Shown one piece after another: positions 45,990 through 57,467 of a stretch of 64,000 bases of DNA (position 1 is the first letter of the stretch; each line of letters begins with the position of its first letter). The notes below the pieces were generated by a model. The model saw only the letters and a list, made by a program, of their open reading frames with translations. It was not told the origin of the DNA and searched no databases. Where the stretch lies: sequence record MN871451.1, one strand, 5' to 3'. A program made the translations under genes and the position numbers.

Positions 45990-46628
45990 ATGAGTCGAGT
46001 GTTGAATACAACTTTTCGGTACACGGATAAAAAACAATCGATTATCGGTGAAGTAGGTAAACACGGGGAGTTGGTAAAAGCCAGTATCTTCTTTGGTGAG
46101 CGCGCAATTGTGAGCTTAACCTGCGATATGCACAAAGTGCGTGACTTCGACGGGTTAATGGCAATAAATACCCAAGGGGAATTGTCGCAACTGATCGGGA
46201 TTTATTTCCACGGGAACTTATACCCCTATAGCTGGAAGACCTTAGCGGACGATATCGTCAAGTTGATTCACAAAGGGGTTGAGAAAGGGCGAAGTGCGCG
46301 AGTTATTTTCTCCTCGTTAAAATACGTTGATGCGTTACCCGAAAAAGGAATAGAAGTTCCTTACTTGTTGGGCGGCAAGACAAAGGTGTTTCGCGTTAAT
46401 TATTTCGGAAGTGCTTTTGTTGACGGGGAATTGGCGAATAAAGCCTTAGGAACAGATCGGCGTTTTATTGAAAAACAAGGTAGGGTAATAGCCAACCAAT
46501 TGAGTAAAGGCGAGGGGTTTGTGAAGTTTGTTTCAGGGAAAGGAAACGCCATGATTGGTGACAAGAAGACAAAAGCACAATTAGTCAGTAAAGTAGAGAA
46601 TCATCCTGTTTTAGTTCCCATTAATTAA
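45990..46628 (+). CDS. Hypothetical protein
   Basis: 212 aa with GAGGGG RBS. Confidence 0.7.
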   Translation: MSRVLNTTFRYTDKKQSIIGEVGKHGELVKASIFFGERAIVSLTCDMHKVRDFDGLMAINTQGELSQLIGIYFHGNLYPYSWKTLADDIVKLIHKGVEKGRSARVIFSSLKYVDALPEKGIEVPYLLGGKTKVFRVNYFGSAFVDGELANKALGTDRRFIEKQGRVIANQLSKGEGFVKFVSGKGNAMIGDKKTKAQLVSKVENHPVLVPIN

Positions 46629-54030: not shown

Positions 54031-54147
54031 GCGCCTCTTTATTCCGTGACATGATTAATGCACATGTTGGGCCAACTTGTCAGCCTCTCAAATTCACTGT
54101 GGCGGTTATGCCGCTTGACACCCATACTTTCCTTAAAGGGAATGCAA

Positions 54148-55005
54148 ATGAAGAAACTTGCTTTTGCCGTTATTTCGGTAGCGTTACTTTGCATGAGTGC
54201 TGGCGTATCCGCGGCCGATGGCAAAATTGTTATCACCACCGGTCAACAAGGTTTAACCTATAACGCCATTTATGGTGTAAACTTAGCCAGTGCTCTGGGT
54301 GAGTACGGTTACCAGACCTCGGTTGTCCCTTCTAAAGGCTCGCTCGATAACCTTGATCGTGTAGCCTCTGGAGAAGCCACTATCGGGTTTACCCAAGCTG
54401 ATGCCTATCAGTTCTGGCGTTCGCGCCATGCCAACGAAGCCCAGAACGTTGATATCATTGGCGAACTGGCCAGTGAGTGCGTCTTTGTCGCCGTCAAGAA
54501 AGACGGTAAGGTCACCAGTAAAGGTGATTTAAAAGAAGGTACGAAGATCGCTGTGGGTGAACCTACCTCTGGATCTTACGCTTCGTGGCAGTATCTCCAG
54601 ACATTGGAGAAAAACTACGCGAAAGTTGAAACGTATGCCAAAGGCGGTATCCGTTCCCTGGCTAAAGTGAATACTGGCGAATACGACGCGTTCCTTTGGG
54701 TTTCTGCACCCGACCGGAATAATAAATTCCTGGACGCAGTCATGCAAAAAGACTCGGGACTCGAGATCATTGATTTCAACTCCTGGAATGCTGATGCAAA
54801 ACTGCCGAACGGTAAAGCGGTGTACACGATCGAAAAAGCAACAACCGACTCGGGTATCATTTTCAATTCGACCGTAAAAGTCCCTTGCACTAAAACCCTG
54901 GTGGTAGCGAATACCTCAGGCGACAGCGACCAGTTCCTTGAAGATGCCTCTACAATTCTTCTGAAGAACTCTGCGCGCGTTCAGGGTACAGCGTCAGGAA
55001 AATAA
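54148..55005 (+). CDS. TAXI-family (TRAP-associated) periplasmic solute-binding protein-like
   Basis: Signal peptide MKKLAFAVISVALL; TTGQQGLTY, SKGSLDNLDRV, GFTQAD, KIAVGEPTSGS. Confidence 0.7.
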   Translation: MKKLAFAVISVALLCMSAGVSAADGKIVITTGQQGLTYNAIYGVNLASALGEYGYQTSVVPSKGSLDNLDRVASGEATIGFTQADAYQFWRSRHANEAQNVDIIGELASECVFVAVKKDGKVTSKGDLKEGTKIAVGEPTSGSYASWQYLQTLEKNYAKVETYAKGGIRSLAKVNTGEYDAFLWVSAPDRNNKFLDAVMQKDSGLEIIDFNSWNADAKLPNGKAVYTIEKATTDSGIIFNSTVKVPCTKTLVVANTSGDSDQFLEDASTILLKNSARVQGTASGK

Positions 55006-55008
55006 GTT

Positions 55009-55173
55009 ATGCTGAAAAAGATCGGCTGGTTAATATTACTGGCCGTCATCTTTTTAGTGTTGTTTCGAATGGCAGGCGTATTGATTGATATTGTCCTGCT
55101 TATTATTCTCGCTGGTGCAATTGCCGTTTATGTGCAGCTTGCTTTCAGAAAGAAAAAGAAACAATCGAGCTGA
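55009..55173 (+). CDS. Small two-TM membrane protein (54 aa)
   Basis: MLKKIGWLILLAVIFLVLF...IAVYVQLAFRKKKKQSS, 3 nt after the TAXI-like stop. Confidence 0.65.
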   Translation: MLKKIGWLILLAVIFLVLFRMAGVLIDIVLLIILAGAIAVYVQLAFRKKKKQSS

Positions 55174-55225
55174 CGGTATTTTACAAAGAGTACATTTATG
55201 TGCTCTTAATAAAACATCGTTTTTC

Positions 55226-55301
55226 GGCCCTGTGGCGCAGTGATTAGCGCAGGCGACTCATAATCGCTTGGTCGCGGGTTTGAATCCCGCCAGGGCCACC
55301 A
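55226..55301 (+). tRNA. tRNA with CAT anticodon, likely Ile2 (lysidine type)
   Basis: Full cloverleaf with CCA; anticodon arm GGCGA-CTCATAA-TCGCT matches E. coli tRNA-Ile2; T-loop variant TTTGAAT. Confidence 0.85.
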
Positions 55302-55306
55302 TATTT

Positions 55307-55388
55307 GCCCGGGTGGTGAAATCGGCAGACACAAGGGATTTAAAATCCCTCGCTTAATCGCGTGCGGGTTCGAACCCCGCCCCGGGCA
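55307..55388 (+). tRNA. tRNA-Leu(TAA)
   Basis: Cloverleaf with long variable arm; CCA not encoded. Confidence 0.9.
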
Positions 55389-55395
55389 CTCCTTC

Positions 55396-55472
55396 GTCCC
55401 CTTAGTTCAGTAGGATAGAACACAGGTCTTCTAAACCTGCGGTCACTGGTTCGAATCCAGTAGGGGACACCA
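55396..55472 (+). tRNA. tRNA-Arg(TCT)
   Basis: CAGGT-CTTCTAA-ACCTG, TTCGAAT, CCA; acceptor stem has a one-nt irregularity. Confidence 0.85.
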
Positions 55473-55566
55473 ATTCAAAATTTAAGTATTTCAATATCTT
55501 ATGAACAAAGATTGTAACTTTCTCTCCGGAATGTTAAGACAACAATCTGATAGTTCAAACTTTAAT

Positions 55567-55642
55567 GCAAGCATAGCTCAGTCGGTAGAGCGATGTCCTT
55601 CCAAGTCATAGGTCGCGAGTTCGAACCTCGCTGCTTGCTCCA
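55567..55642 (+). tRNA. tRNA-Gly(TCC)
   Basis: 76-nt cloverleaf, discriminator T, CCA. Confidence 0.9.
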
Positions 55643-55649
55643 GATACAA

Positions 55650-55751
55650 TGTTCTCGTAGCTCAACTAGGTAGAGCGCCTGCATCGGCGGCCACTGCGCC
55701 GCCCACTGCTTAGCAGGAGGTTGCCGGTTCAAATCCGGAAGGGAACAACCA
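55650..55751 (+). ncRNA. tRNA-like RNA with a 30-nt hairpin-containing insert in place of the anticodon loop
   Basis: D-arm GCTC/GAGC, stem CCTGC/GCAGG, T-loop TTCAAAT, acceptor TGTTCTC/GGGAACA, A-CCA. Confidence 0.7.
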
Positions 55752-55758
55752 AACAAAA

Positions 55759-55833
55759 GGTGCTATCGTCTAGCGGAAAGGATACCTCCCTGTCACGGAG
55801 GAGACCGGAGTTCGATTCTCCGTAGCACCGCCA
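55759..55833 (+). tRNA. tRNA-Asp(GTC)
   Basis: Cloverleaf, discriminator G, CCA. Confidence 0.92.
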
Positions 55834-55839
55834 AACAAT

Positions 55840-55916
55840 GACTCTTTAGTTCAGTTGGTTAGAACGGCAGCCTGTTAAGCTGTAGGTCCCAGGTTCAAGT
55901 CCTGGAAGAGTCGCCA
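55840..55916 (+). tRNA. tRNA-Asn(GTT)
   Basis: Cloverleaf, discriminator G, CCA. Confidence 0.92.
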
Positions 55917-55923
55917 TTTTAAT

Positions 55924-56013
55924 AGAGAGTTGGATGAGCGGTTTAAGTCGCTCCCCTGCTAAGGGAGTGTATCCGAAAGGGTACCGAGAGTTCGAATCTC
56001 TCACTCTCTGCCA
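55924..56013 (+). tRNA. tRNA-Ser(GCT)
   Basis: Cloverleaf with long variable arm, G73, CCA. Confidence 0.92.
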
Positions 56014-56019
56014 AATAAT

Positions 56020-56245
56020 GACATCTTGCTTAGACTAAAGGTAGGGGTTAACCAGGCGACTTAATGTTGCGGAGAGTTAATCTTGGCCTAAGGCAAAAGT
56101 TGACCTCGGCGTGCTGAGGGGGATGTCTCCTTGTTATCCCTACGTAAATCATCGACGAATAAATGAGCCGTTAAATACGACCCATTTAAGCATAATTGCA
56201 TCTCGGCTAAACACCGGGCGCTGCTGGTGTAGATGATACTCATTG
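56020..56245 (+). ncRNA. Candidate pseudoknotted RNA between tRNAs
   Basis: ORF-free; crossing helices identified by eye. Confidence 0.35.
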
Positions 56246-56266
56246 AGTGCTAGGGAACCTATTCAA

Positions 56267-56374
56267 TGATAGGCTAGCTTAAAGGTAAAGCGCGGGCATT
56301 AGGCCCCCTCTCATACGAGGGGCGCCTTAACATGGGAGCCTGAGATAGCCGTTCGATTCGGTACCTATCAACCA
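56267..56374 (+). ncRNA. tRNA-like RNA with a 40-nt hairpin-containing insert in place of the anticodon loop
   Basis: Acceptor TGATAGG/CCTATCA, D-arm GCTT/AAGC, stem CGGGC/GCCTG, T-loop TTCGATT, A-CCA. Confidence 0.7.
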
Positions 56375-56379
56375 AAGTT

Positions 56380-57030
56380 GGACTTAAAAGAGAGAGTGCG
56401 AGTTAATGGGTCGCACAACGCCACTAGGCGAGACACCGGAGTCAGTGGTGGCGCTAGTAGAAGAAGTCAGTTACCGGTATGCGGCCGCAACAAATTAACT
56501 GATACCCATTCTACACTTTTAAAGTCCACGTAACCTTTACAATACTGCTCTAGTCAAGTGATATTGTTTACAGAGAGTGCAGGTTCGACTCCTGCTCGGT
56601 AGTAGAGGCTCGGTAGGAAGGGAGTTCGGAATCGTATCCGAATGATTTGTCCAATAAGCAATAACTTATTGGTAACTCTCGTGAGACAAAGACTTCGGCG
56701 ACCCGCCGGTTAAACGCGCCGCGGAATCGGCCGAGGGGTACTAATTATGACGCCTGTCAATTTCGGCGGCCTACGCCTTAGAGCGAAAATAGGCGGCCAT
56801 AGACCATAGACCTCAGCCGGGGATTCCGGCGAAAGAGGTGCAAGGAGCCGGCAAAAATGTCCGGGGGCGTCACCCTATTCGATCCATTTCTCCAACGTAG
56901 AAGGGATCGGGTATTAAAAATCTGGAAATTAAGCTAACTCGTATAGCCGAGAATAAACATGTTTCGGTGGCGACCTTAACATGAAAAGGATGATGTGCGA
57001 TAAGTCATTTATGAGCTAAACACTGAGATC
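56380..57030 (+). ncRNA. Candidate large multi-domain structured RNA
   Basis: About 650 nt ORF-free and GC-enriched; many helices, GNRA/UUCG-type loops and an internal T-arm GCAGG-TTCGACT-CCTGC. Confidence 0.5.
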
Positions 57031-57049
57031 CTTTTGACTATTAGTCAGT

Positions 57050-57080
57050 ACGAGAGAGGGTCGAAAGACCCTCTCTTTAT
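57050..57080 (+). terminator. Terminator closing the tRNA/ncRNA unit
   Basis: GAGAGAGGGTC-GAAA-GACCCTCTCTTT. Confidence 0.7.
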
Positions 57081-57136
57081 GCTGTTAATTTTATGAACCA
57101 TACATTTTCTTTTTCATCAATTGAAGGCGCAAAAAG

Positions 57137-57289
57137 ATGATCGGTACTATTCTCGGTGTAGTAGTAGTTGCAATTATTGCGATCTTTGTTTATCGTAAAC
57201 ACAAAGCTAAAATGGATCCGGCGCTGGACAAAGTAGCGGAAAAATTTAACGAAGTGAAAGACAAGGTTAGCGATAAACTGGGCAGCTAA
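57137..57289 (+). CDS. Small membrane-anchored protein (50 aa)
   Basis: MIGTILGVVVVAIIAIFVYRKHK...; follows TTATGAAC at 57091. Confidence 0.6.
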   Translation: MIGTILGVVVVAIIAIFVYRKHKAKMDPALDKVAEKFNEVKDKVSDKLGS

Positions 57290-57467
57290 TTTAAATTAAC
57301 AGCGGTGACCTGTTATTATGTAAACAGCACCACCTGTTAACCGAATCGCGATGCCAGCGCGGTAGCTTCGTCTGAGAAATCAGCGTGGCAACAATACGAC
57401 TTTGCTTGTCGTGAGACATTCAAATAATCGGGCTAAGGGGAGGGCGGAAGCTCTTCCCTTTATGCCA

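Follow-up and report, generated by a model that had tools for sequence, protein, structure and literature searches.

Two transfer RNA (tRNA)-like genes of the phage KpYy_2_45, here named T1 and T2, carry a GC-rich hairpin in the place of the anticodon loop. They lie in an island of RNA genes within a 64,000-nucleotide (nt) stretch of sequence record MN871451.1, and this whole stretch is referred to below as the window. We tentatively favor the view, to which we give slightly less than an even chance, that T1 and T2 are non-decoding, tRNA-shaped stable RNAs that are made and stabilized like tRNAs and that either display the hairpin or mimic the tRNA body or CCA end. Four things that underlie this view were observed directly: the anatomy of the two genes, their conservation, substitutions that preserve the structure, and a design that recurs in other phages.

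KpYy_2_45, a Serratia phage by its record name, is a 302-kb jumbo phage isolated on Klebsiella pneumoniae and a relative of phiKp24. A preliminary description of the window had guessed at a nucleus-forming lineage, which is reasonable because tubulin and nucleus-shell homologues have been reported for phiKp24 (10.1101/2021.03.02.433402). The relatives compared were KpZh_1, KpSz_1, KpXa_1, KpLz_1_41, KpLz-2_45 (Siatvirus), LPKP23, MJ359, Centimanus, and phiKp24/FBKp24 (Maaswegvirus). Homologues of T1 and T2 were sought by BLAST against 50,697 phage records, by pattern scans of IMG/VR and JGI data, and by protein-anchored retrieval. L-numbers denote contigs or loci; L017 is a metagenome relative, and X32 is a sludge metagenome run containing a diverged T1.

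Anatomy and conservation of T1 and T2

The features attributed to the two genes in the preliminary description, namely a U1-A72 pair, an extra base before the D stem, an irregular T-stem junction, A73-CCA, and hairpin inserts of 30 and 40 nt that both begin with AT, were all present as described (Table 1). The linker before the D stem has three bases, not two (GTA in T1 and CTA in T2), and neither gene shows the canonical geometry of two linker bases and a 5-base-pair (bp) T stem stacked on a 7-bp acceptor stem. The anticodon loop of a decoding tRNA (7 nt closed by a 5-bp stem, with U33 and, at position 37, a purine) is also missing, the loops being 30 and 40 nt long. Within the T1 insert, the hairpin is flanked by ATC on the 5' side and CACTGCTTA on the 3' side, and within the T2 insert by ATT and TAACATGGGA. 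Both insert hairpins were more stable than shuffled sequence (z scores in Table 1), and the predicted cloverleaf-plus-hairpin fold of T2 was robust, with a probability of 0.8–0.99, and dominated the ensemble. The T2 hairpin is capped by TCATAC, which reads CCATGC in FBKp24, Centimanus, and L017, leaving C-A-T and the final C constant. The proposal that this cap is a working CAU anticodon does not hold up: the loop has 6 nt and varies among relatives, and the arm is approximately 10 bp too long.

Standard tools recovered the two genes only in part. The Rfam tRNA model (RF00005) scored T1 at 38.9 bits (gathering threshold, 29) by treating 28 nt in the anticodon loop as an insertion, and did not match T2 even at E≤5. 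ARAGORN called neither gene by default; when introns were allowed, it called T2 at default sensitivity, labeling it tRNA-Pro(tgg) with a 33-nt intron, and both T1 and T2 at a relaxed threshold (-ps90). In the GenBank record of MJ359, the homologous spots of T1 and T2 are annotated as “tRNA-OTHER”. When the window was scanned for a T arm joined to a perfect 7-bp acceptor stem and NCCA, eight sites were found, comprising six tRNAs, T1, and T2, as against a mean of 0.05 sites in 100 dinucleotide shuffles. T1 and T2 are tRNA-like modules far beyond chance expectation. An Rfam search of positions 54800–57400 at E≤5 found no ribozyme, intron, transfer-messenger RNA (tmRNA), or Y RNA at T1 or T2, apart from a sub-threshold overlap with the bacterial Y RNA YrlA (RF02553). 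The YrlA matches reached only 22.5 bits against a gathering threshold of 69 and fell mainly on ordinary tRNAs; one (55611–55676) also covers the first 27 nt of T1. The topology of Y RNA is the opposite, since the ends of T1 and T2 lie in the acceptor stem. Nor did ARAGORN call a tmRNA, and the 3:70 pair is U-A in T1 and A-U in T2, not G3.U70.

T2 was present in every relative examined, including L017, with 96–100% identity, and T1 in all relatives but L017, with 93–100% identity. Compared with FBKp24, T1 and T2 were 99% and 97% identical, the downstream non-coding DNA 75–89%, the upstream open reading frame (ORF) 83%, and the bona fide tRNAs of the cluster 82% to 100%; flanking coding and non-coding DNA together ranged over 75–90%. 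T1 and T2 match genuine tRNAs in conservation and surpass their flanks. T2 exceeded both its flanks in identity in FBKp24 and in L017, where it was retained at 96% although HNH endonuclease genes had replaced T1 and most of the tRNAs. Relatives with normal tRNAs and unconserved inserts, which would have spoken for random decay, were looked for, and no insert-free allele of T1 or T2 occurred in 13 phage records, IMG/VR, JGI metagenomes, or Logan/ENA contigs. Moreover, T2 from which the insert had been deleted matched only T2, with no tRNA relative detectable by BLAST. Conservation across Chimalliviridae, which had been proposed as a check, was not borne out: BLAST, pattern scans, and protein-anchored retrieval returned near-identical sequences from the narrow phiKp24/KpLz group only, with no diverged homologues, and relatives of the NMT1-like protein encoded upstream led to bacterial contigs without tRNAs.

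The substitutions sit in loops, in unpaired flanks, or at already mismatched outer T-stem positions, or else they keep pairing. In T2, pair 28:75 of the anticodon stem changes from G.U to G-C; the other changes are two in the hairpin loop (TCATAC to CCATGC) and A81>G in L017, which turns the outer T-stem A.A into G.A. T1 of Centimanus has A-U in place of the outer T-stem G.A, and its T-loop positions 54/58 read A..U, not U..A. In the T1 variant of X32, positions 55679, 55680, and 55715 change jointly and 5/5 anticodon-stem pairs are kept, while the 3' flank is altered at four sites. The U33 equivalent of T1 (55684 T>C) is C in FBKp24 and KpLz_1_41, and 55704 C>A is found in KpXa_1. Judged from these comparisons, T1 and T2 are maintained and not decaying. 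Decoding looks relaxed in T1, because the U33 equivalent varies, the 3' flank changes, and no single excision yields U33 and a purine at 37 around a conserved anticodon; T2 would acquire a 7-nt loop only after the exact removal of 33 nt.

The cores of T1 and T2 are 61% identical, and the odd junctions are common to both. The two genes are best seen as putative paralogues derived from one altered tRNA-Pro-like gene, and common descent would most simply explain the oddities that they share. Of the earlier claim that the shared design indicates a functional class and not random decay, the part concerning maintenance stood (93–100% identity, with changes that respect the fold), whereas the shared design itself is explained most simply by paralogy. 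The likeness to phage tRNA-Pro(UGG), represented by T4 tRNA-Pro and rV5 trnP, is extensive: the D arm, anticodon stem, and variable loop of T1 are nearly the same (GTAGCTCA..GGTAGAGCGCCTG / CAGGAGGT), the TGGGA half of a Pro anticodon loop survives in T2, A73 occurs in both T1 and T2 as well, and CCA is encoded as in rV5. Unlike these tRNAs, T1 and T2 have a hairpin insert instead of a 7-nt loop and one base more at the 7/8 junction, their outer T-stem pair is mismatched, and they carry U1-A72 where the T4 and rV5 tRNAs have C1-G72. The identity of E. coli-type tRNA-Pro depends on A73, C1-G72, and accessible G35/G36, and G72 is a determinant for E. coli prolyl-tRNA synthetase (ProRS). A73 is present in T1 and T2, C1-G72 is replaced, and the GG of T1 is buried in the hairpin stem. 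T1 and T2 should be poor ProRS substrates, because C1-G72 and an accessible GG anticodon have been lost.

Table 1. Positions in the window of T1, T2, their parts, and other RNA features of the island
Feature	Position	Strand	Basis
T1, tRNA-like gene, 102 nt	55650..55751	+	Rfam, relaxed ARAGORN, motif scan, MJ359 annotation, conservation
T1 acceptor stem TGTTCTC/GGGAACA, with U1-A72	55650-55656/55741-55747	+	sequence
T1 D arm GCTC-AACTAGGTA-GAGC	55660-55676	+	sequence
T1 anticodon stem CCTGC/GCAGG	55678-55682/55713-55717	+	sequence
T1 insert, 30 nt, in place of 7-nt anticodon loop	55683..55712	+	sequence, fold
T1 insert hairpin GGCGGC-CACTGC-GCCGCC	55686-55703	+	z = -2.9; unique in window
T1 T arm, G.A outer pair and extra A before 3' acceptor strand	55723-55739	+	sequence
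T1 A-CCA, encoded	55748-55751	+	sequence
T2, tRNA-like gene, 108 nt	56267..56374	+	ARAGORN with introns, robust predicted fold, MJ359 annotation, conservation
T2 acceptor stem TGATAGG/CCTATCA, with U1-A72	56267-56273/56364-56370	+	sequence
T2 D arm GCTT-AAAGGTA-AAGC	56277-56291	+	sequence
T2 anticodon stem CGGGC/GCCTG	56293-56297/56338-56342	+	sequence
T2 insert, 40 nt, in place of anticodon loop	56298..56337	+	sequence, fold
T2 insert bulged hairpin (A)GGC-CCCCTC-TCATAC-GAGGGG-C-GCC(T)	56301-56327	+	z = -3.95; unique in window
T2 hairpin core CCCCTC-TCATAC-GAGGGG	56305-56322	+	sequence
T2 T arm, 4-bp stem and A.A outer pair	56347-56363	+	sequence
T2 A-CCA, encoded	56371-56374	+	sequence
Seven standard tRNAs around T1: Met/Ile2-CAT, Leu-TAA, Arg-TCT, Gly-TCC, Asp-GTC, Asn-GTT, Ser-GCT	55226..56013	+	ARAGORN, Rfam
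160-nt structured insertion directly after T2 CCA	56375..56533	+	alignment; closed three-arm fold, z = -3.7
Conserved structured RNA, ~210 nt, downstream of T2	56534..56745	+	RNAalifold, five relatives
Terminator-like hairpin AGAGAGGGTC-GAAA-GACCCTCTCT with T-rich tail, ending the island	57053..57093	+	sequence; terminator annotated at homologous FBKp24 place

Recurrence of the design in unrelated phages

Pattern scans of IMG/VR revealed tRNA-like genes with a hairpin for an anticodon loop in unrelated phage contigs. For example, an insert of 42 nt is present in L019:6983-7096, which stands alone between the genes for SSB and Gam, and another gene (L027), beside tRNA-Glu and near genes for a DNA polymerase/primase and an HNH endonuclease, has a 27-nt insert with the hairpin CCCCC-GCGA-GGGGG. 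Further examples were found in L064, in five contigs of the L071 type, and in L047, L092, and L039. In L019, L027, L064, L039, and L092, no single excision restores a U33 loop. The anticodon-replacing hairpin appears to be a convergent design that arose independently in unrelated phages, because the acceptor stems, discriminators, and CCA status all differ among these examples. One pattern was run over both IMG/VR and 185,579 prokaryotic genomes; in the latter, it mostly retrieved intron-bearing tRNAs of DPANN archaea, with one clear bacterial case, in a cyanobacterial tRNA array. This case (L184:2469-2567, + strand) is a 99-nt tRNA-like gene with a 31-nt anticodon-loop insert in a dense tRNA array of a cyanobacterial metagenome-assembled genome, and ARAGORN reports it as “tRNA-???”.

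Two other kinds of unusual tRNA-like genes were noticed. Over-long genes recur in large viral contigs of IMG/VR (L041, L042, L044, L060, L062, L079, L081, L086, L096, L103, L110, L127, and L148), in which the extra 40–60 nt form a hairpin with a conserved ACAGCAA or GCAGCAA after it and the anticodon stem cannot be placed. In a 120-kb viral contig (L090:3505-3630, + strand), a tRNA-like gene has a 57-nt insert with CTGATGAG...GAAA that resembles a hammerhead ribozyme core, making it a candidate.

Function and alternative explanations

If T1 and T2 are non-decoding stable RNAs, their transcription would be shared with the tRNA cluster, within a 1.9-kb RNA island. The two RNAs would be excised like tRNAs, with RNase P making the 5' end and the usual 3' trimming stopping at CCA, because the acceptor stem, the D/T elbow, and the encoded A-CCA are intact. 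The tRNA fold would stabilize the RNAs, and the GC-rich hairpin on the extended anticodon arm, replacing the loop, would preclude codon reading. T1 and T2 might then act as a natural “tRNA scaffold” that shows the hairpin to a protein or RNA partner, or as mimics of the tRNA body or CCA end for factors that recognize tRNAs away from the anticodon. In all this, we infer expression, processing, charging, the unspliced state, and a partner from the sequence, and the two RNAs probably do not decode unless some enzyme removes the insert.

Several points weigh against this reading. The cloverleaf-plus-hairpin structure of T1 lies 1.2 kcal/mol above the minimum free energy and is thus not the minimum-energy fold, and the T1 anticodon stem has a predicted ensemble probability of only ~10%. 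No partner or target of the hairpins was found in the window (up to 3 mismatches), in plasmids (both inserts), or in E. coli genomes (T1 insert). The diversity is very small: T1 occurs in five distinct sequences and T2 in three, with one more variant visible in part. No change in a hairpin stem of T1 or T2 was seen among the relatives, and because there are only five and three distinct sequences, selection on the hairpin stems is not demonstrated. RNA-library contigs from four runs are unspliced but have only ~4x depth and may be DNA. The remaining points concern splicing. Removal of 56301–56333 from T2 gives the loop AUUGGGA, with U33 and G37, in a normal 75-nt cloverleaf, a textbook tRNA-Pro(UGG); no other tRNA-Pro is known in the phage group; the codons CCA and CCU are used by the phage 1.9x and 2.5x as much as by the host, with which the ORFs of the window agree; and FBKp24 (phiKp24) encodes an RtcB ligase (Pfam E = 4e-120).

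According to the alternative that these last points favor, the inserts would be short protein-spliced tRNA introns: an endonuclease would excise 33 nt from T2 and ~23 nt from T1, and the phage RtcB would join the halves into tRNA-Pro(UGG) and tRNA-Pro(CGG) for genes rich in CCA and CCU codons. We regard this as rather unlikely, and as plausible mainly for T2. In T1, the 5' side of the insert reads A-U-C-G-G, placing the Pro anticodon CGG at 34–36, and its D arm, anticodon stem, and variable loop are, as described above, close to those of T4/rV5 tRNA-Pro. Tens-of-nt inserts also have precedent in the tRNAs of Lak megaphages, whose short introns have been called “enigmatic” (10.1101/356790), and some of the IMG/VR examples could regain canonical loops (L071, Asp GUC; L047, Lys UUU). 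However, no bulge-helix-bulge motif was seen on inspection of either predicted fold, no dedicated search for it having been run; the folds show a 3–4-nt 5' bulge, a 6–10-bp hairpin, and a 9–11-nt 3' single strand, with no second bulge 4 bp off. The insert position is inconsistent, at 33/34 or 34/35 in T2 vs 36–38 in T1. Splicing of T1 would leave a pyrimidine at 37; two relatives have C in place of its U33, and the 3' flank of T1 drifts. CCG, the codon of CGG, is under-used by the phage, and U1-A72, the extra base at the 7/8 junction, and the weak T stem all depart from tRNA-Pro. No splicing endonuclease was identified, and RtcB is common in phages as a repair enzyme. The four RNA-library runs contained no spliced joint, in contigs of low depth that are too thin to count.

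Two further ideas on splicing were rejected: the RtcB neighborhood did not qualify as a splicing operon, the flanking proteins having no Pfam match, and no consistent excision rule emerged over T1, T2, and the IMG/VR examples. The earlier suggestion of a processed intron-like insert is possible for T2 and weak for T1. The earlier statement that the inserts are too short for group I introns was correct, the core of such introns exceeding 200 nt, and neither Intron_gpI nor any other intron or ribozyme model of Rfam matched at E≤5. We consider it unlikely that the inserts are genuine short introns processed by a protein endonuclease and the phage RtcB, which would be the first non-group-I tRNA splicing in a bacterial virus. 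If they were, splicing might time or gate the supply of tRNA-Pro, and the insert-bearing tRNA genes of other phage contigs might belong to the same hidden pathway.

A further alternative, which seems doubtful to us, is that T1 and T2 are tRNA-Pro pseudogenes inactivated by insertions in the anticodon loop that persist in a young lineage and serve at most as RNase P punctuation for their neighbors. The known family is indeed narrow and closely related, and high identity alone is weak evidence. The part of the cluster containing T1, Asp, and Asn is 99–100% identical between KpYy and FBKp24, which could reflect recent recombination; T1 differs from that of Centimanus by 7%, like the adjoining non-coding DNA, and has been lost in L017 without apparent harm. 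Furthermore, T2 adjoins a covarying 210-nt RNA in three relatives, which fits a role as a processing signal. Against this stands the pattern of change: of the 11 observed substitutions, none disrupts a stem pair that was already there, and in several cases pairing is restored or improved. As noted, the conservation of T2 exceeds that of both flanks, and T2 has been kept everywhere although HNH elements often replace or destroy tRNA genes of the cluster, with no partial or decayed copy seen. Independent phages, one of them without any other tRNA, also bear the same design.

We give very little credence to the idea that T1 and T2 are decoys for a host defense that targets tRNAs (an anticodon nuclease or an uncharged-tRNA sensor), or that they mimic a clustered regularly interspaced short palindromic repeat (CRISPR) as an RNA anti-CRISPR. 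Phage tRNAs do counter tRNA-cleaving defenses, the tRNA body and CCA end are intact, and phiKp24 encodes a RelA/SpoT-like enzyme. Nevertheless, anticodon nucleases and the ribosome-bound RelA sensor require the anticodon loop, which is absent from T1 and T2. Both decoy functions put forward in the preliminary description have this point against them, and the anticodon-nuclease form is not supported. No defense-related gene is linked to T1 or T2, and within the window no repeated element corresponds to the hairpin sequences. The CRISPR-repeat mimic was rejected: plasmid-borne arrays gave no match to either insert, and E. coli genomes gave none to the T1 insert. A mobile palindromic element was likewise discarded, as neither hairpin recurs in the 64-kb window at up to 3 mismatches.

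The RNA island and known systems

T1 and T2 belong to a 1.9-kb non-coding RNA island, from 55226 to ~57093, that contains seven tRNAs, T1, T2, and other structured RNAs and no convincing ORF. The tRNAs are separated by 5–7 nt, save for a 94-nt gap between Arg and Gly, and CCA is encoded in 6/7. T1 lies 7 nt 3' of tRNA-Gly and 7 nt 5' of tRNA-Asp, much like the neighboring spacers, and T2 lies 253 nt 3' of tRNA-Ser. KpYy, MJ359, and KpLz have the 160-nt insertion that follows T2, FBKp24, Centimanus, and L017 lack it, and a joint that skips it occurs in metagenome contigs. The insertion has 11–12-bp terminal inverted repeats and is possibly a small RNA that is mobile or was acquired separately. 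The ~210-nt RNA directly adjoins the CCA of T2 in FBKp24, Centimanus, and L017. RNAalifold predicted 56 pairs in it, 14 with compensatory changes; long-range helices close it, an internal hairpin (GCAGG-TTCGACT-CCTGC) resembles a T arm, and no Rfam family matched it at E≤5. Between this RNA and the terminator, ~300 nt of non-coding sequence (56746–57052, + strand) are 97–99% conserved in most relatives, including L017, and 89% in FBKp24, and probably represent another RNA. The terminator is conserved; in FBKp24, a T-A pair in it has become C-G by a compensatory change.

The cluster is unstable. In Centimanus, KpLz-2_45, L255, and L017, its tRNA genes are separated or split by HNH endonuclease genes, and the cluster content differs between phages because the HNH genes interrupt or replace tRNA genes. 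The loci in relatives are L017:1-1560, L004:1625-2086, L005:1790-2245, and L255:529-1666; in L017, they replace the 5' part of tRNA-Arg and the region from mid tRNA-Gly to just upstream of T2. L017 also has an extra tRNA-like element (1910–2000, + strand) with the acceptor stem ATCGGGT/ACCCGAT, A-CCA, the T arm GTAAG-TTCGATT-CTTAC, and a body that is not a cloverleaf. It is inserted at the equivalent of window position ~56744, and the same insertion appears in run X17 as loose ends. In phiKp24, a suppressor-like tRNA whose anticodon is TTA (L011:4070-4154; FBKp24 46,041-46,120) lies about 3 kb upstream of the cluster; ARAGORN made no call at the corresponding place of the KpYy window. Upstream of the cluster in the window, an ORF at 54058–55005 (+ strand) encodes an NMT1/TAXI-like solute-binding protein. 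Its closest non-phage relatives (72–74% identity) are encoded on contigs that also bear the enterobacterial small RNA STnc100, which suggests that the gene was acquired from a host.

The usual view of phage tRNA clusters is that of kits of ordinary tRNAs for codon supply or anti-defense. T1 and T2 keep the parts of a tRNA that serve recognition, processing, and stabilization, without the part that reads codons, and the island includes, besides the strongly folding 160-nt insertion, at least one other RNA that covaries strongly and is unclassified. If T1 and T2 are spliced, they would represent a protein-based route of tRNA splicing that is not known to have been described in viruses that infect bacteria. 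The introns of archaeal and eukaryal tRNAs are likewise short, lie in the anticodon loop, and pair with anticodon bases, and an RtcB-family ligase exists in the phage group; however, T1 and T2 lack the two 3-nt bulges and 4-bp helix, their inserts are not consistently at 37/38, no EndA-like protein was found, and the host is bacterial. Bacterial group I tRNA introns (Leu-UAA, fMet, Ile, and Arg) also interrupt the anticodon loop, and the T2 insert is at or next to the 34/35 site of tRNA-Leu, but these introns differ in their length (>200 nt, as against 30–40 nt) and in the Intron_gpI match and terminal G that the inserts lack. Lak megaphages likewise have over-long tRNA genes that bacterial tRNA finders leave unclassified, with inserts that, compared by description only, are similarly tens of nt long, highly conserved, and without a known splicing mechanism (10.1101/356790). 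They differ in that they interrupt Phe, Gly, Thr, and Tyr tRNAs, have excision points taken from a eukaryotic model, and belong to another host and lineage.

Other parallels concern unspliced RNAs. The T4 stable RNAs C and D (species 1 and 2, rnaC/rnaD) are small stable RNAs inside a phage tRNA cluster, annotated beside tRNA-Arg, and this cluster also holds a homing endonuclease gene, segB. Like T1 and T2, rnaC has paired ends and a T arm, which is canonical in rnaC. RNAs C and D differ from T1 and T2 in being 139 and 119 nt long, in having no evident sequence relation to them, and in not forming simple cloverleaves with a substituted anticodon loop; in Rfam, they gave only a weak tRNA-Sec-like match (E = 0.9). 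By analogy, the location and tRNA-like ends of T1 and T2 would fit stable RNAs of the rnaC/rnaD type. The architecture of T1 and T2 is identical to that of the engineered “tRNA scaffold” (Ponchon and Dardel; PMC3753655), in which a structured RNA is placed on the anticodon stem of a tRNA and the chimera is processed and stabilized like a tRNA. The scaffold is man-made, whereas T1 and T2 are natural, conserved, and recurrent in phages, with a payload of just a 6–10-bp hairpin. If unspliced, T1 and T2 would be natural counterparts of this scaffold and members of a class of phage small RNAs neglected in the same way as T4 RNAs C and D for 50 years.

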